Shown piece after piece: positions 8,557 to 24,736 of a DNA stretch of 64,000 nt. The notes under the pieces were generated by a model that made no database searches, was not told the DNA's origin, and saw nothing but the letters and a program-made list of their open reading frames with translations. Both the position numbers and the translations under genes were made by a program. How positions within the stretch are numbered: position 1 is the stretch's first letter; each line of letters begins with the position of its first letter. The DNA is taken from assembly GCA_904063045.1 (NCBI GenBank), contig CAJFCJ010000002.1, positions 2,006,422 to 2,070,421 on the forward strand. The letters are read 5' to 3'. This stretch comes from Dimorphilus gyrociliatus (taxonomy: Eukaryota; Animalia; Annelida).

Positions 8557-9867
<1,311 letters not shown>

Positions 9868-10635: not shown

Positions 10636-12363
10636 CTATTGTTTTATAAATTTAGCAATAAAAAAGCCTAATTGATTGTTCAACGGATTAAATCGTTGTA
10701 ACAACAGTCTATCTTCTTCTGATAACTTCTCAACTTCAATACCTCTATCGCCTAAATAGAATGGCTGTTCAATTAATTTTAAACTTGGATATTTTTCCAA
10801 AATCCATCCAACTTGATTTTCATTTTCTGATACAATAATGGTACAAGTGCTGTACACAAGTATTCCTCCTTTTTTTAACAGTTTTTCAGCCTGTAAATTA
10901 CCACAACTTAATATTCATTACTTAACGAAGAAAGAATGTACTACCACTGGAATTAATTTACGTTGATAAATAGCATGAGACTTGAGAGACTTAACGTTCG
11001 AATCACAATTTAGTAGAGGTCTCTGACCCAACGCACTACAAGGGGCATCCAATAAGATTTTATCGAAGGTTTCTGGCTCAAAAGGAGGTTCAAGCATATC
11101 ATTTTCACCTGGAAAAATTATGAAAATATATTAGGATATAAGCTATTAATTACAGAATTACAAAATTTACATTGATCTTTACATAATTTGCAACTATCGT
11201 ATTTGTAAACTTTTATATTGTCTAAACCCAAAGAGATGATGTTCTTGCGGGTTTTTTCCACTTTTGGTGTATTTTTATCTATTGCGATCACCTGACCCTA
11301 AAAAATCGGAAAGATTTACGTATTAAAATCTTGTTCATTTGCTAGTGACTACCTTTTGACGCATCAAAGTTGCAATATGAGTTGTCTTGCCTCCAGGAGC
11401 TGCACACATATCCAGAACAAGATCATCTTGTTGAGGATCTAATGCGTAAGAGCAAATAATTGAAGGAATATTTTGAGGAAATAGTATATCTGGGAGGACA
11501 TTATTCAAACTTGGTAATGCGTATATAGGCTCTGTCATACTAACACCAACCCCTCTGAAAATTATAGATTTTATGTTCAAATGAAAGCGTAAGCTTTATT
11601 ATTATTTAATTAACACACTGTATAGCTCTCCCGCTGAAGAAGTCGTCTCTATCAAATTGACTAACGCCATTCCCTAGGAATAGTTTCTTTCCTTGATAAC
11701 TCTTAAGGAAACCTTTAAGACATTTTCCTTCAAGATCAGCCCAAACTGAAACTAGATCGTTTTTCTTAATTCCTTTTCGAAAGCAAAAAAAACAAAAAAG
11801 TACTTGTAATGCTATTATTTTAGAGTTTAAGAAAATGTAACCTGGATGGCACCCGAGGACTCCCTGAGCGTAAACATCTGCACCTTTCATTACCGATGAC
11901 CCGCATCGAATATCAACAATTATTTCTTCTTCGTAACTTTGCCTATCAAAGGGACCTTCTCCATTTATACAAATAGTATCTTTAAGTATAGAATGTTGGT
12001 ATGGAACAAAATTTGTTCTTTTCTGGGCATTTTGCTATTAAGAATATAACTTTAGAATTTAGACCAATTAACATTTAATGTAAACCTTTTTCAAAATTTC
12101 TTCTAATAAGACTACAGCCTCTTCAGTTGAAATTTTTAAAGTGTTCACTCTTAGAGAAGTTAGGAGATATGGTCTTGATAGTTGATCCAAAAGACTATCT
12201 AATTCAACTTTGTAACTCTCTTCTTCAGCATTTTTAACAATCTTTAGAAAATAGATTTTAAAAATTAGTATCTCTACAATGACATTATTCGGTGAGAGGA
12301 AAAATTATTTACTTGCGAAAGATACTCATTATGTATAAAGGATTTAAATTCATTAGAAAACAT
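10636..12363 (-). CDS. NSUN6: tRNA m5C72 methyltransferase NSUN6-like (PUA domain plus RsmB/NOP2 methyltransferase domain), multi-exon
   Basis: CGSSVMKGADVYAQGVLG (PUA), PQNIPSIICSYALDP, VLDMCAAPGGKTTHIA, LLDAPCSALGQRP, VYSTCTI...ENE, GFFIAKFIK; ATG at 12363. Confidence 0.92.
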
Positions 12364-12932: not shown

Positions 12933-14150
12933 TTACTTACGATCTTTAAAAATTGCCAGTTTGAGAAGTTCACAAGAACTTAGCCGTCTCAATGGATCAA
13001 TTGATAAAGTAGCCAAAATAAAATCAAGTTCGTAGTTTTTCATATCTGCTAAAGATGATGAATATTTCATTAATTGCAGTTGTTCGTGTTCTCCCAATCT
13101 CATTTTAATTAGATCTTCGTGCATTTCATTATTTCCTACAATTTTTGAGAGCCGTCCTAATTGATAGAGGAATTGTAAGGGTTCCGTATATTCCTCTACA
13201 TGTAAATAGATGTATATAGATTTCGTTTTGGCAGTCAAGTATGATATGCCTAAAGACCAAATGTCATTTTTATAATCATAGGAACTCCTTGTGATTTTCT
13301 CGGGACTCCAAGATAGAAGGTTACCTCTGAATTTGCAAATGTCGTCTTGGAATCTTGAACAATTAAAATCTATAAGTTTCGCCTGAAGTTTTCCCTTAAC
13401 ATTCGCCACTAAAATATTTTCCAGTTTAATATCCTCGTGCTGTATCCCTTTACTATGCATAATGCATAGACATTCTGTTATGTCTTTAAAGATTGTCCTT
13501 AGTTCGTAAGTTGTTGGATTATAATCATGAACAAATGATCGAAGATCAACACAAAATGTTTGACCTTCGAACTGTTCCATAAAAACAGCGACTGTCGATG
13601 AGAAATAACAGAATGCATAGAAGGAAAGAAAATTATCGTACGACCCCAAAATTGATAAGACTTTTATTTCAGTCAAAACCATATCTAAATAGGTTTCTGT
13701 CACTTTATATTCTTTCAGAACAAATTTTTTCTTTGATTTTTTATCCTTTGCAAGAAGAACCCTTGCAAAAGCTCCTTCAGCAATGAATTGCGTCTTTTCA
13801 AAGCTAACGTTTTCATTATAATGACCGTTTTCTGGTACAAGAGGGTTCGACGGATTGCTTAAAAGAATCATAGTTCCAGGTTTATCCTTTTTTTGTAAAT
13901 CTATCCAATTTAAATTGCATATGTCAGTAAATCCTGTCTTTTCAAGAGAAGTAACCTTAAGGTCGCTAAAACTTAAGGACACTGTCCCAGTTCGAATATC
14001 GGTTGCGACATGTTTTTTAATATCCTTTCCTTGTTCGTTAATAGGAGCAGATAAGGGATGGCATGAAAGAACGCATTCTTCAGTAGGAGTTTCTAAACCT
14101 TGATTCTCGTTCTCCTCCTCAAAAGTCAAAGAATTTTCTGGAGTAGGCAT
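12933..14150 (-). CDS. Intronless Ser/Thr kinase, MAP3K8 (COT/Tpl2)-like, non-RD, DFN instead of DFG
   Basis: 405-aa ORF: ILLSNPSNPLVPENGHY...FIAEGAFARVLLAKDKKSKKKFVLK resembles the COT N-lobe; HEDIKLEN; DFN; WSPEK; DIWSLG. Confidence 0.8.
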   Translation of the reverse strand: MPTPENSLTFEEENENQGLETPTEECVLSCHPLSAPINEQGKDIKKHVATDIRTGTVSLSFSDLKVTSLEKTGFTDICNLNWIDLQKKDKPGTMILLSNPSNPLVPENGHYNENVSFEKTQFIAEGAFARVLLAKDKKSKKKFVLKEYKVTETYLDMVLTEIKVLSILGSYDNFLSFYAFCYFSSTVAVFMEQFEGQTFCVDLRSFVHDYNPTTYELRTIFKDITECLCIMHSKGIQHEDIKLENILVANVKGKLQAKLIDFNCSRFQDDICKFRGNLLSWSPEKITRSSYDYKNDIWSLGISYLTAKTKSIYIYLHVEEYTEPLQFLYQLGRLSKIVGNNEMHEDLIKMRLGEHEQLQLMKYSSSLADMKNYELDFILATLSIDPLRRLSSCELLKLAIFKDRK

Positions 14151-15211: not shown

Positions 15212-16273
15212 TTAATCATTTAAGCAATAGAATAGGTCCAATTGTAAAATTTCATTGGCAGATTTTCGTTTTGAAGGATCAATAGCTAAAGTAGCTTTAA
15301 GAAATTCAATTTCCATTTGATGTAAAGTTTGCAATTTAGGAAAATAGTTTAATATTGAAGAATTAACTGGACCTTCTTCTGAGCGAAATTTTTGCAAAGT
15401 TTCATAAATAGCATCATTATGAAGATTTCGCAATTGGCCTATATGAAGGAGACAATTAAACCTATTTGGCTCTTTTAATGGATAAATCAAGTTCGATCGT
15501 AATTTGGCCTGCAAGTAAGAAATTCCAATTGACCATATATCTAATTTATAGTTGCATCTCTCTCCTTTACAGTTTACTTTCTCTGGACTACTTGTTAGTA
15601 CGTTACCACTTTCGTAATATACTCTACGACAACATTCATATTGAGAGAGGCCAAAATCAATTAAGTGACCTTTGAACGAATGTTTACCTCCTCTAAAACA
15701 GCGTTCTATTACAATATTATCGGCTTTGATGTCCTCATGAACGATACCTTCCTTATGTAAGGAGGAAACTGCGGCTAATACATCACGAAAAATGCATCTC
15801 AATTGAAAAAAATTCAAATCCTTTTTATAGCAATAATTTTGTAGAGAATGTTCAATTTTTTTCATAAAAATACTAATATTATATTCACCAAACTTAATTG
15901 CATAAACATCTGGAAAAAAACTAGAGCTATTCATTCTGACTAATACGGAAATTTCCATTTCTGCTTCTGCTTTTTTACTATATTTATAAACTTTCTTAAT
16001 TATATCTTTATCATTTATCCTCATATTTTGAAGGAAAACAGAACTATTGGAATTATTTCCAAAATATTTCTTTGTTATTAAACTTTGTAAATCTAAAGAC
16101 GTACCATTTTTATCCAAAAATGGATTATTTTGAGACTTTAGTATAATTAAATCATTAATAATTAATATATCCCTTTCATCCAACGATTCCAAATAACTGA
16201 AGTTCAATAAGTATTTATTGTAATTTTCACCAAATTTCATACATTTTTTCAGCCTTTTCTTAACAGAACCCAT
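15212..16273 (-). CDS. Intronless divergent Ser/Thr kinase, paralogue of the 12933-14150 kinase
   Basis: 353-aa ORF: HEDIKADN, DFG, GNVLTSSPEK, DIWSIGISYL, ATLAIDPSKRKSANEIL; Gly-rich loop degenerate (FGNNSNSSVF). Confidence 0.8.
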   Translation of the reverse strand: MGSVKKRLKKCMKFGENYNKYLLNFSYLESLDERDILIINDLIILKSQNNPFLDKNGTSLDLQSLITKKYFGNNSNSSVFLQNMRINDKDIIKKVYKYSKKAEAEMEISVLVRMNSSSFFPDVYAIKFGEYNISIFMKKIEHSLQNYCYKKDLNFFQLRCIFRDVLAAVSSLHKEGIVHEDIKADNIVIERCFRGGKHSFKGHLIDFGLSQYECCRRVYYESGNVLTSSPEKVNCKGERCNYKLDIWSIGISYLQAKLRSNLIYPLKEPNRFNCLLHIGQLRNLHNDAIYETLQKFRSEEGPVNSSILNYFPKLQTLHQMEIEFLKATLAIDPSKRKSANEILQLDLFYCLND

Positions 16274-16583: not shown

Positions 16584-19500
16584 TTAGGGAGTTTGCTGGT
16601 CGTGTTTAATGTGCCCTTGTTCATCTAAGAACCATGAGTAGCTTCTATTCCAACGTTTCACCACAACAGTTCTTAGATCTCTATCGTCACTTGGATTTAC
16701 TTTCTCTCCAGGATCAATTAGTCTTCCACTATTGTTATAGCAGACTACAAATCGCCTTTTTTCTCCGTCTTCATGAAATTTATTCGCCATAAGTTTAAGA
16801 ATATTTGACCACGTTTCCATCCTACGAAGTCCATATTCCTTGTCTTCAGAACCTTCACAAATAAATTTTATAGTTGAGTCATTTTCTATAGATGACAGTT
16901 CCTTATCAAACCAATCCTAATTTGAAAAATCAGATAATTATTCAATTAACAAACAAATATGAAAATTTTATTACCACCTCAGGTTCATCCTCATTTATGT
17001 TGGAATCTATCGAATCTCTCTCTACACTGCTGTCATCGTCCCTTAGAGTCCCGAATTGGTTACTTCCGTCATCTATTACAGCTAAATCATTTCTCAAAAA
17101 ATCTTCAAATGCTAAACTGCTTATATTCGATTGATGGGTTGGTTTTTCAGGTTCAATTTCTGTGCTGCTCCCAGAATCATCAATCTCCCTGATATTCATA
17201 GAAAGCATAGGGTGTATTAGAGCCTCAAAATCGGGAAGTTGATCAGAATCAACTCTTTGTACCCCTTGGTTTATTTCTTGTTCTATGGACTTATTTTCAT
17301 CACACACAACTTGCGGAAGATTTTGAGCTGAGGGTCTACTAATATCTTGCTGTAAAACAGCTGGTAGTGGAGCCTGCCTATTAGGAGTTGCCATTCTATC
17401 TTGCTGTAAAGAAGCTGGTAGTGGAGCCTGCCTATTAGGAGTTGCCGCTCTTTCTTGCTGTAAAACAGCTGGTAGTGGAGCCTGCCTATTAGGAGTTGCC
17501 ATTCTATCTTGCTGTAAAGAAGCTGGTAGTGGAGCCTGCCTATTAGGAGTTGCCGCTCTTTCTTGCTGTAAAACAGCTGGTAGTGGAGCCTGCCTATTAG
17601 GAGTTGCCATTCTATCTTGCTGTAAAGAAGCTGGTAGTGGAGCCTGCCTATTAGGAGTTGCCGCTCTTTCTTGCTGTAAAACAGCTGGTAGTGGAGCCTG
17701 CCTATTAGGAGTTGCCATTCTATCTTGCTGTAAAGAAGCTGGTAGTGGAGCCTGCCTATTAGGAGTTGCCGCTCTTTCTTGCTGTAAAACAGCTGGTAGT
17801 GGAGCCTGTCTATAAGGAGTTGCCGCTCTTTCTTGCTGTAAAACAGCTGGTAGTGGAGCCTGTCTATCAGGAGTTGCCATTCTTTCTTGCTGTAAAAAAA
17901 CTGGAAGTGGAACCTGCTTATTGGGAATTAGCACTCTAGTTTGCTGTTGGCTTGGTCTTGTTGATCCAGCAACTTCCAATATAAAAGTTTCTAAGTGTTC
18001 AGGATCGGGATACGACTTCAAAAATTCTGTTAACAGTTTCATTTCCTCTAGACTATATAAGCTGTTTGAAACTTCCTCGGGAATACGGATGTGACTGATT
18101 CTATCCATTATGTTGAAGAATGTTGACGACATAATATCTTCATCCGGTACTGATGTGTCCATTGGTGAATTTTCATCACTAAACACGTTTAAATTTCTCG
18201 ATTTCTGTCGGGATCTTAATGTAGCAGGCATTGACATCTCGTCAGTGTAAGTAACTTCCCTAAATAAGGTATGTCTCAACAGATTATCTATCTCAATCCT
18301 TTTCTTGTGTTCGATTTCAAAAACTTTATCAAAAAAATCTTTCAGAGACCTCTTTGATGAAGTATATTTGCTTAATTTCTCCAGTATCGGAGGTCTCTTA
18401 CACATTCCTATGGTAAAGACAATTTCTCCTCGACAATCTGCCCAAGGTACTTCTCCAGTTATTACATGGGCAGCCATTATACCGATAGCCCAAATATCAG
18501 CTGCCTTATTGTATTCACCTCTTACTTTCTCTGGACTAAAAGCAAATATCGATCCTCTATAGCCCCTATGGTTTTCTGTTAGGAATCGTGACAGACCAAA
18601 ATCAACCAGCACCGGACGACCATTCCTTCGCCGAACCATGACGTTTGCAGCTGGATAGAAACACTTGTAGTATATAAATTAATTATAAACTGCATACCTT
18701 TAATATCTTCGTGAACAATGTTTAATTTATGGAGAACTGATAGTTGTTGGCAAACACCTTTAATGTAGAATATAGTTTGCTTAACGCTTAACTTTTTTGA
18801 AGTCTTTATCATAGACTCGAGGTCTTCCCCCTCAATGTACTCCATCAATAAATTTAATTTGTCATTTTCCTTAATCACACCATAAAATTGGACGATTTGG
18901 TCATCTTCCAGCGCAGCCTTGGCCCAAGTTTCGACTTCAGAGAGATTGTATTCTATATGTTTTGCCAGAACTTCCTACAGAGAGAATTGTAACTTGAAAA
19001 TGTAATATAAAAGTTAATAAAAAGTTTAGATATCTTACTTGCTTAATAGCAAAAATATAACCAGTTTCCAAATCTTTAACTTGATAGATTTTTCCTTGCC
19101 CTCCTTTATTGTTCCCCAAACCAGATAGCTGGGTATAATTTTCATTTAGTTTATATCCTCCGTTGAAAATGCTTATCTTCTTGCTCATTTTTTTCCATAT
19201 AAATCCTTCGTTACAGACTTGACTATTTGCTAAATTATCTTTAGAAATCAATAAAATTATAATATCTTACATTTATATATTTAACATCAATTTTACCTTG
19301 AAAGGACTTAAAATCTGAATATTTTGTTGTGTATCTTACTTTTCCAGGATTCCTTGTCAAACTGGAGGTGGTAAAACTTGAGGAAGAACACTCAAGTATC
19401 TCCCTTTTGAGTTCTTTTATACAGGTCTTTTCCTTATTTATTTGTTCTTCCATGTACTTCCTCAATCGGTCTTGAAATTTTGGCTTTTTGAGTCTGGAAA

Positions 19501-20956
19501 TAAAATTTATAATCTTAAATAAATGAACAAAATGATATAAATATTAAGAAATTATACGTTAGCATTGGATTATGTTTCCTTTGGAATTTGCTGTGATATT
19601 GTTGACACCAAACTATGTTGCATGTATCATAAAAACAGTTTTTCAAATGCTGAGCCAGGATTTCTAAGATAGCTTCGCACAATGCGCAAGATTCAAAATC
19701 CTTACAAGTGGTAAAATGTTTAACAGCAGCTCCGAGTGCCCCATCTATGGAAGGGTTTAACAGAAACTTGTTAATTTTTGCAATAATCTTAGGAGATAAC
19801 TGCTGGTAAGAGTCCATTCCCAAAAGAAAATTTTCTAACATTTGTTCATCTTCATCTGCTTCCTCATTATCATCCTATTTACAATAGAATTTTTTAAACC
19901 GACATACTTAATAAATAATTTACTCACTGGTTCCTTTGAAATATCGGTACGTCTTGGAGGATCTTCATCTCCTCCTCCTCCTCCACCTCCACCAAAACTA
20001 GAAAAATTAGAAAGAGTTATACTTCGTGCGTCGCTCCTTGGATTATCTTTCAAGATTGATTCCGGTTTAGTGTCGTGGACTGGATCGTTGTTTCCTTTCT
20101 CGTTAGGAGCTTGTCGTCCTATGGAACTTGCTTGTTTTAAGTTAAGAGACAAGACATATGATAAATTTTCGTTTGATTCTCGTATAGCCTCAATTACACA
20201 TATATACTGTGGAGCAGACTTCAACTTGTCATCGTAGTAACTAAAATCGCCGCTAAGTTCTGGTTTCAGTTTTACCAGGCTGTCATTATTCTCAAAATCA
20301 ATTGACTCATCATTCTGGGTTTCACCAGGCATTTCAAATGACAGCAGTAGGTTACCTTGGGTGCAACTATTACGTTGGGCAATAGTTTCTATATTGATCT
20401 TGATAGACTCTAGATCAGTTTGCTCTGTGTCTTCAATACCGCAACTTTTCGAACTAACATTATCCAAGAATGAAGAGGACCTCAAAATATATTTAGAATC
20501 ATTCTGTTTTGTACATAGCTCATTTAGAGGCGATCGCATATAGGATACACTATTACATTGTTTTTCCTTTTTCCCTTTAACCTCAACACAAAAATTGCTG
20601 TTTGTCAAAGATAGAATAGAGTTTTCGTCTAATATATTGTAAGTGGTTGACTTTCGGGTATCTATAGTTGAAATTTCGCAATGGGAATAATTAATTCTGT
20701 ACTTGTCATCTTTCCGAATGATCTCCGATTGAATATCATTTATGCATTCCGATTTTATGTCTTTATAACTTTCATAGTTAGAATGGTTCTGTTCAAGCCT
20801 CTCAAAACTTGAATACTCAACTTCTAGAACCTTAGTCGAAGAAGAAACTAAGTCAGTATCTTCGTCCATGAATCTCTTAAAAATCTCTGATTTTGTGTTC
20901 AAGGTTCCATGTGTATTTTCCGAATTGATAATTTTATCTGTTCCTCCGCCACGCAT
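16584..20956 (-). CDS. Multi-exon NIK/MAP3K14-COT family kinase with a partial TAZ zinc finger, an 18-aa repeat tract and a NIK-like C-terminal domain
   Basis: Reconstructed order: long acidic Ser-rich exon (probable ATG 20956, MRGGGTDK), exon 19558-19874 (Cys/His cluster), NEGFIW...NGGYKL, GGQGKIYQVKDLETGYIFAIKQ, IVQFYGVIKE...LLMEYIEG, HEDIKAANV, PVLVDFGLS, FSPEK, DIWAIG, repeats, last exon ending YSWFLDEQGHIKHDQQTP. The start codon is less certain than the rest. Confidence 0.8.
17346..17930 (-). repeat. 54-bp coding minisatellite, 10 full units plus one degenerate, with a 108-bp higher-order dimer
   Basis: CTTGCTG recurs every 54 nt from 17346 to 17886; encodes QQ[ED]R[AM]ATP[NYD]RQAPLPA[VS]L. 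Confidence 0.97.
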
Positions 20957-22212: not shown

Positions 22213-24736
22213 ATGCAATTTAGACTTGGCGGAGGAGTTTTTAAGATTAAACATCCACAAACTATTGTCTTAGTGATCGTTTTGACTGTTTTAACAGTTT
22301 TCATGGTCTTTAGCTTTCATGATCGAATTGACTTGCCTACATACGATGATTTACAACTTGAAAAGAGGCAGATGTTAAAGAATAAAAATTTAAATGAAAA
22401 GGATGTATATATGGATTTTGATGCAGATGGAGCCGGAGACGATAAAGAACTTTTACTTGATTATCCATTTCGAAAGAAAAATGATAATAAGCCACCTATC
22501 GAAGGAAATAAGGAATCTGTAAATGAAGGAACTATGCCAAAAAATAAAAATACTTTAAATACTGATATTAAAGAAGAAGACACATTTCCTAAACAACAAG
22601 GTTATTATATTAAAAGTAACATTGATTTATGACAAAAACGGAAGAAAATAAAATTATTTTTATTTTTTTAGAGCTAAAGATAACTTTTTTTTTCTCCAGA
22701 GAAAAGTAATATAGAGTATTCCCAACCTGCTATGAAGCCAGCTTATAAGGATAGACATAAGATTAGAAGAAAATTACAAGAAATTCTTACATATGCAGCT
22801 CCGCTTAGACCAAATGATGAACACTATAATATAAATGTTACATTGAGTGATAGAACATCTATGGATAGACAAATTAGGGATACCAGGCCAGAAGTCTGTA
22901 AAACTAAACAGTATGATGCTAAGACCCTTCCAACTGTTGCTGTTATCATACCATTTTTCAACGAAGCATTGTCAATGCTTATTCGTACTGTCCATTCAAT
23001 TTTAAACAGGTCACCTGATATGCTACTTGACGAGGTTTGATATATAAGAATTATGATCTCTTTACTGAAAGGAAAATACTAACTTATATTCTTTTTTTTG
23101 TAAAGATTATTCTTGTTGACGATAAAAGCACGGAAATATGGCTTCAAAAGCCATTAACCGAGTACATGAAATTGTTACCTAAAGTAAGAGTTATTCGTAA
23201 CACAAAACGAATGGGTCTAATAAGAAGTAGGATGGTTGGTCACAGAGCAGCTTTAGGTAATTTTGACAAACTTTAAGATGAATTTTATTTAATCAGTTAT
23301 TTTATTAATTACAGCTGACGTTTCAATATTTTTGGATGCTCATTGCGAGGCTAACGAAGGTTGGCTCGAACCAATGTTAGCTTACCTGCAAAAATATCCG
23401 AAAGCTGTCGTTCAACCTTACGTTGATGGTATTGATACTGGTACAATTGAATACTTGCCGGCTACAGAACACCTTCACGTTGGTGCATTCAACTGGGAAC
23501 TTAGGTATTGTTTGTAACACTTGCTATCAATTTTCTTATCTCAGAATTTGGTGCATCCTTTTTGCTCTATCTATGAAATAGGTATACATGGTTGAAAGTA
23601 CCAGATCATAAGACTATATTTCACCTAAATACGGGAGAAGCTATAGATAGTCCAACATTAGTCGGTTGTGCAATAGCAGTAACAAGATCGTTCTTTGATG
23701 AAATTGGCGGATTTGACGAAGGTCTTGAAATATGGGGTGGAGAAAATTTGGAGTTGGGCTTTAGGGCTTGGCAATGCGGAGGGACAGTTGTAACTCTTTT
23801 ATGCTCCAGAGTCGGTCATGTGTTCAAGAATTTTCCATACAAATTTGATGGAAATAGAGAACAGGTGAAGTATTTTTTTCAGTTCTTTCAATTTTCTCTA
23901 TTGTTTTCATATGAAAATTTTAGGTTGTAACAAAAAATCTCATGAGAGTTGCTGATGTTTGGATGGATGGTTATAAGAAATTCTTTTATGCATCTACTTT
24001 CATTTATGAGATTAAAAATACAACTTTCAATATGGCAGAGCTACAATCAATTGAAAGGTGGAAAGAGCATAGAAAGCATTTGAAATGCAAAAACTTTGAA
24101 TGGTATATGCATAACATTGTTCCAGAAATGGAGACGCCGCCAAGAGATGCTCATTTCTACGGCGAAATAATGAATGTAAGATCCAAAGCTTGTTTTGAGC
24201 TATACAACGACTATTATATTGGTATGAATTATATTTGCTACGAGCATAAGGTTATCCCATACAATTTCTTCTCAATATCTAACGCCGGATTATTAAGATG
24301 GAAAGATAAATGTATAAAAGTTCTCTTCCCAAGTCCTGCTCTTAGATTAGTTGACTGCCCTCCAATAGACGCAAATACCTCAGCTTTATACGATTTTGGA
24401 ATTTTTAAAGTAAAACTTATAGGTAATACATTATATTTATTCGCCAACTACACTTCAAATAATCCACGTTAAATCTATTTATCTTACTATTAAGGTCATA
24501 CCTGGGGTCAGCTTCGATATTATGTTAGAAATCCGAGCACTAAGAATATAGATAAATACTGTGTTGTTCAAGTTACAAATGTCTTACCCGAACATGAAAA
24601 AGAGCAGATGCCACAGATAGGAGGGTGTAGAGAAAACGATAATTTCCAAGTATGGTCTTTTACTCATCGTTTTGACTTTAATCTTTATGCTAATACCGAT
24701 TTTGCAACGAATATGACATATAAACATAAGCAATAA
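22213..24736 (+). CDS. Polypeptide N-acetylgalactosaminyltransferase (GT27), type II membrane protein with a ricin-type lectin domain, multi-exon
   Basis: N-terminal TM (TIVLVIVLTVLTVFMVF), LPTVAVIIPFFNEALSMLIRTVHSILNR, ILVDD, GLIRSR, DAHCE (DxH), DEGLEIWGGENLELGFRAWQCGG, C-terminal Cys-containing lectin repeats ending QVWSFTHRFD...; TAA at 24734-24736. Confidence 0.93.

Follow-up and report, generated by a model that had tools for sequence, protein, structure and literature searches.

The Dimorphilus gyrociliatus gene DgyrCDS1393 encodes a protein of 1342 amino acids, entered in the database without a functional name, in which one exon upstream of a protein kinase domain probably specifies a TAZ-derived module that has two of the three zinc sites. 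The best explanation, given a probability of about 0.6, is that this two-zinc module is an obligatory part of the protein and would most likely bring the kinase together with a partner or substrate or, alternatively, act as a latch in cis. The textbook function of TAZ fingers is to dock disordered activation domains, and to our knowledge they occur almost exclusively in CBP/p300 and the plant BTB-TAZ proteins.

Gene structure and transcript

The gene lies on the minus strand of the window, which is the whole 64-kb stretch of DNA that was analysed. With about 30-35% G+C, the window is rich in A and T; its genes are densely packed and their introns very short. The public gene model, P0001, is identical to the model built here. 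Its features, in window coordinates and in the order of transcription, are as follows.

19928..20956, minus strand: exon 1, coding part; open reading frame from the first ATG at 20956 to the donor CCA/GTGAGT
19558..19874, minus strand: exon 2, with the Cys/His pattern; 317 nt, entry phase 0, exit phase 2; residues 344-448 of P0001
19803..19874, minus strand: acidic stretch with the amphipathic motif DDNEEADEDEQMLENFLLGMDSYQ; by composition 10 D/E and no K/R
19677..19718, minus strand: putative Zn2-equivalent zinc site, H396-x3-C400-x5-C406-x2-C409, from the pattern, the PDB alignment and the ligand list of PMC11328122
19605..19649, minus strand: putative Zn3-equivalent zinc site, H419-x3-C423-x4-C428-x4-C433, from the pattern, the PDB alignment and PMC11328122
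19297..19493, minus strand: exon 3; basic linker from zinc module to kinase, P0001 residues 449-514, pI 9.8
19039..19238, minus strand: exon 4; start of the kinase domain, with the Gly-rich loop and the AIK lysine K580
18698..18974, minus strand: exon 5; kinase helix C to the non-RD catalytic loop HEDIK, within the Pfam Pkinase match
16975..18650, minus strand: exon 6; kinase C-lobe (DFG 690, SPEK 712), then a long tail
17343..17947, minus strand: tandem repeats of a 54-nt unit in about 11 copies, or, read as a 108-nt double unit, in 5.6 copies
16584..16916, minus strand: exon 7; the last 110 amino acids, with the stop at 16586-16584; placed by P0001 mapping, with a loose contig end at 16977

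Exons 1 to 6 are separated by five introns of 53, 64, 58, 64 and 47 nt, all of them GT-AG. A 2810-nt transcript contig (run X2) aligns to 17838-20933 and has all five predicted introns removed exactly; the N-terminal, Cys/His and kinase exons are therefore in one mRNA. Exon 2 is bounded by an acceptor AG directly before 19874 and a donor GT at 19557-19556, and its joint with exon 1 is at 19927/19873. The first-pass annotation had predicted from the letters that the Cys/His exon enters in phase 0, leaves in phase 2 and splices in frame into the kinase exons, and the joints in the contig match that prediction exactly. Because the exon is 317 nt long with these phases, skipping it would shift the frame of the kinase.

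The joint 18650/18698 was also found in a coral-tank metatranscriptome run. A 2024 "coral metagenome" metatranscriptome (run X1) contains spliced contigs that are 90-100% identical to the window at 18606-18893 and 19308-19493. The coral-sample sequence departs from the window at 19420 and 19453. The coral sample seems to harbour D. gyrociliatus or one of its close relatives.

Exon 1 specifies an acidic, disordered N-terminus of 343 amino acids rich in Ser, Asn, Asp and Glu (pI 4.8), beginning with MRGGG and closing with a run of eight glycines, with no credible domain. A match to the restriction endonuclease family RE_AlwI in this region (P0001 66-159; 20479-20760, minus strand; 23.7 bits against a cutoff of 23.1) covers Ser/Asn/Ile-rich low-complexity sequence and is most likely a compositional artefact. 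The Gly8 run is followed by the acidic amphipathic segment EDEQMLENFLLGMD, the two-zinc module (pI 8.6), the basic helical linker, the kinase, a set of 18-residue repeats and the C-terminal 110 residues. The linker forms a long helix in a low-confidence AlphaFold2 model.

The repeats of the C-terminal tail are near-identical, with the 18-residue sequences RQAPLPAVLQQERAATPN and RQAPLPASLQQDRMATPN. Transcript contigs break up within them, and the copy number may be uncertain. Exon 6 closes with a tandem donor, GAG/GTG/GTAATA (16973-16980, minus strand); the gene model keeps Val1232, and the run X2 contig uses the donor 3 nt upstream, ending at 16978 and dropping Val1232. The exon 7 region (DWFDKELSS...HIKHDQQTP) gave no Pfam match at E <= 0.01, and these 110 residues may form an undescribed small domain.

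The putative two-zinc module

Exon 2, read from 19874 to 19558, is a 105-codon open frame whose translation is DDNEEADEDEQMLENFLLGMDSYQQLSPKIIAKINKFLLNPSIDGALGAAVKHFTTCKDFESCALCEAILEILAQHLKNCFYDTCNIVWCQQYHSKFQRKHNPML. The peptide AVKHFTTCKDFESCALCEAILEILAQHLKNCFYDTCNIVWC, which had been quoted for this exon at the outset, is contained in that frame; the plus-strand reading was ruled out, since its translation is interrupted by many stops. The Cys/His pattern is H-x3-C-x5-C-x2-C-x9-H-x3-C-x4-C-x4-C, with the eight candidate ligands at H396, C400, C406, C409, H419, C423, C428 and C433. In the six-frame translation of the window a relaxed double-HCCC pattern occurs once, in exon 2, and it was found in none of 200 shuffled windows, so a chance origin of the pattern is negligible.

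The defining features of a TAZ domain are four amphipathic helices, packed around zinc at helix-loop-helix junctions, and three zinc sites of the HCCC type (PMC11328122). In p300 TAZ2 these sites are Zn1, H1744/C1748/C1753/C1758; Zn2, H1767/C1771/C1779/C1782; and Zn3, H1792/C1796/C1801/C1806 (PMC11328122). A HMMER alignment of the exon to p300 TAZ2 pairs all eight ligands with those of Zn2 and Zn3, as had been proposed, with a two-residue gap in the first loop (x5 in the worm module, x7 in TAZ2) and about 26% identity overall. The remaining spacings (x3, x2, the nine-residue spacer between the sites, x3, x4 and x4) are exactly those of TAZ2. Retention of eight out of eight ligands at about 26% identity suggests that zinc binding is under constraint. 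Other features that are probably shared are the placement of the HCCC sites at predicted helix ends, as in both TAZ2 and TAZ1, the hydrophobic pattern of helix 3 and, beyond the last Cys, a predicted long helix.

The worm module departs from TAZ2 in lacking Zn1. The 52 residues of the exon that precede H396 contain neither His nor Cys, which agrees with the earlier reading that site 1 is absent, and an ungapped projection would place I373, I377, L382 and D387 at the four Zn1 ligand positions. The module is also mildly basic and belongs to a kinase rather than an acetyltransferase.

Profile searches gave the same family at marginal scores. Exon 2 alone matched Pfam zf-TAZ (PF02135) with an E value of 8.8e-5 and 23.3 bits; the score was 23.4 bits for residues 385-470, 22.4 for residues 344-520, 20.1 for the whole protein and 26.5 for a 51-residue core. 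The gathering cutoff is 25 bits, and the core alone exceeds it. P0001 393-433 is the matched region, and on the profile side the match always spans positions 34-72 of 72; sites 2 and 3 are in this half. The expected Pfam match was thus obtained in part: zf-TAZ is the sole zinc-finger family reported, even at E <= 10, but in context the score is below the cutoff and only half of the profile is covered. A phmmer search of the exon against PDB sequences gave weak matches (best E 0.054), and 11 of the 11 are TAZ2 domains of p300 or CBP. The nearest clusters in the features of a protein language model (ESM) are zf-TAZ clusters, at 0.89, 0.89 and 0.85 for the exon, and zf-TAZ was again nearest for residues 385-455.

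Structure prediction was less informative. AlphaFold2 was run without an alignment because the exon has no homologues to align, and the confidence was low (pLDDT 45 for residues 344-500 and 54 for 352-452). The weak model has helices at 386-398, 403-419 and 430-444, which coincide with TAZ2 helices 2 to 4. A helix is also predicted, at low confidence, in the acidic stretch at 19803-19874. This stretch looks like an activation-domain peptide in its composition; it could either act as a cis ligand or be what is left of helix 1. When the low-pLDDT models were searched by Foldseek against PDB, by VIA-align wide and by the Atlas shape search, the matches were helical bundles of a generic kind, with no TAZ domain among them; this outcome is taken as uninformative rather than as evidence against TAZ.

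Relatives of the exon

When the exon was compared exhaustively by phmmer with 1.84 billion cluster representatives at E <= 1e-3, the only matches were P0001 and one spurious repeat protein (P0002). In a database that large, a genuine TAZ relation of 17-25 bits would not pass. With no further match, there is no recognisable orthologue or paralogue that contains exon 2, nor is the exon a recent copy of the TAZ2 of the worm's own CBP. Among the 73 kinases matched in word searches, PF02135 is listed for none. In the parts of the literature that were searched, zf-TAZ appears in CBP/p300, plant HAC or BTB-TAZ proteins and transcription-factor catalogues; no fusion to a kinase is described in these sources, and in the one paper naming both zf-TAZ and Pkinase, so far as its available text goes, TAZ is a comparison domain only. 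The suggestion that the architecture is undescribed therefore stands for the literature and protein collections covered. The TAZ-kinase architecture looks unique to the D. gyrociliatus lineage, and it is possible that a TAZ-kinase fusion exists elsewhere with unrelated sequence.

TAZ domains have been reused as docking modules outside CBP/p300, in the plant BTB-TAZ proteins (BT1-5) and in small TAZ-only proteins such as those of nematode clusters. The small TAZ-only clusters are the nearest neighbours of the worm exon in ESM features. Unlike the worm module, all these proteins have the full three-site TAZ and score above the Pfam cutoff; a kinase domain is attached to none of them in the literature searched or the clusters returned.

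The absence of relatives at E <= 1e-3 among 1.84 billion proteins, the sub-cutoff Pfam score in context, the tendency of Cys-rich sequences to inflate HMM scores and the failure of the structure searches to confirm TAZ with low-confidence models would all fit a chance or convergent resemblance, the exon being a lineage-specific, Cys/His-rich helical stretch, zinc-binding or not, with no homology to TAZ. Such an origin is decidedly improbable. It would have to account for the match of every ligand and of all but one spacing, for the agreement of three independent methods (Pfam, PDB sequences and language-model features) on one family, which is also the only zinc-finger family reported, and for the absence of the double-HCCC pattern from the shuffled windows. 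A TAZ-derived module with two zinc sites is the reading that these observations favor.

The kinase domain

The kinase domain gives a Pfam Pkinase (PF00069) match of 141.6 bits, above the cutoff, over residues 559-803 (window 19107-18262, including introns). Its motifs are intact, with AIK at 578-580, HEDIK at 669, DFG at 690 and SPEK at 712, and the kinase is probably active. The best-scoring solved kinase domains are of the STE-group MAP3K/STE20 type, at 75-88 bits: in a phmmer search of PDB, MAP3K2 scored 88 bits, MST1 80, ASK1 77 and NIK 75. With these kinases it shares the HxDIKxxN catalytic loop, DFG and a DIWS-type motif, and it differs from them in the HED loop, an atypical Gly-rich loop and SPEK in place of APE. 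It has no clear orthology to any single one of them, and the identity to any database match is at most 34%.

It had been proposed that the kinase belongs to the NIK/COT family. In its fuller form this would make DgyrCDS1393 an invertebrate orthologue of NIK (MAP3K14) or COT (MAP3K8), with the TAZ finger docking NF-kB/Rel-type activation domains. The catalytic loops of NIK (HGD) and COT (HHD) are non-RD, as is the HED loop here; the SPEK motif is reminiscent of the SPE of COT, and NIK structures are among the better PDB matches. A non-RD loop, however, occurs in many other kinases and does not define the NIK/COT family. MAP3K2, MST1/2 and ASK1 score at least as well as NIK, and COT is outside the best 60 PDB matches. 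A profile built from the three tandem paralogues scores best against STE20-type kinases, ULK1 and ASK1, with both NIK and COT outside the best 60, and word searches started from residues 344-810 or from the kinase by itself returned generic kinases at 23-34% identity, none of them named NIK or COT. Flanking features of NIK and COT were not seen. The family label was dropped, and NIK or COT orthology is very improbable. The description that fits the domain best is that of a divergent, fast-evolving STE-like kinase, lineage-specific and non-RD (HED).

DgyrCDS1393 is the upstream member of three tandem kinase genes on the minus strand (12933-14150, 15212-16273 and 16584-20956). The other two are intronless single ORFs of 405 and 353 amino acids, and both are only 27% identical to the TAZ-bearing kinase; the HEDIK loop and the SPEK motif are common to all three. 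The Cys/His exon is confined to the upstream gene. The genes neighboring the tandem kinases look ordinary. They include a GMP reductase/IMPDH-family gene (8557-9692, minus strand), an NSUN-type RNA methyltransferase-like gene recognised by eye from the motif DAPCSALG (10636-11890, minus strand) and a glycosyltransferase family 2 gene with a weak Glycos_transf_2 match (22213-24472, plus strand), which in our own reading of the sequence is polypeptide GalNAc-transferase-like.

Proposed functional model

In the preferred model, the helical, TAZ-derived module, with the eight ligands of sites 2 and 3 kept and site 1 lost, would bind two zinc ions at its helix-loop-helix junctions. By analogy to TAZ1 and TAZ2, it may present a surface for short acidic amphipathic peptides. 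Since TAZ1 and TAZ2 bind acidic amphipathic peptides of activation domains, its most likely role would be to dock on the kinase either a partner or a substrate. Another possibility is that it binds in cis to the acidic ENFLLGM motif immediately preceding it and so serves as a regulatory latch. A docking function of either kind is suggested by the known TAZ domains. The activation domains of NF-kB/Rel, STAT or p53 type that were first proposed as docking targets are speculative candidates.

A zinc module placed N-terminal to a kinase has a precedent in design. The C1 domains of Raf/KSR and PKC are small Cys/His zinc modules N-terminal to a Ser/Thr kinase, with functions in recruitment or autoinhibition. 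The C1 domain differs from the worm module in fold and ligand pattern (HC3-type, beta-rich, binding lipid or Ras), and the two have no sequence relation, the zinc-finger match of the worm module in Pfam being to zf-TAZ only.

A TAZ-derived module need not dock activation domains. Together with the basic linker, which directly adjoins it and is predicted to be helical, it may have a structural, dimerising or nucleic-acid-binding role, setting the position of the kinase or activating it. The loss of Zn1 takes away part of the canonical peptide-binding scaffold, and CBP TAZ2 also binds DNA, which makes a nucleic-acid-binding role conceivable. Peptide docking, on the other hand, is the best-known function of TAZ, and nothing was found that points to nuclear localisation, DNA binding or dimerisation. 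A role of this kind is considered unlikely, and recruitment or latching by the two-zinc module remains the preferred reading.

A bolder version of docking is distinctly unlikely. The two-zinc finger would tether a MAP3K-like kinase directly to the acidic activation domains of transcription factors, or, by binding the protein's own activation-domain-like ENFLLGM motif, would keep the kinase closed until a competing activation domain took the motif's place. If true, this would be a new signalling device that links the activity of the kinase to the docking of transcription factors, an arrangement not known for any kinase.

Significance

These findings carry limited weight: they concern one orphan gene of a single species, for which no conserved relatives were found. 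The TAZ match is absent from the precomputed Pfam annotation of P0001, which means that sub-threshold fusions of this kind are invisible to surveys of domain architecture. A TAZ-like module that occurs naturally with just two of three zinc sites would reveal what share of the TAZ fold is dispensable. The TAZ-kinase fusion would be a new case of domain shuffling, in which a docking surface for transcription factors is combined with a signalling enzyme.
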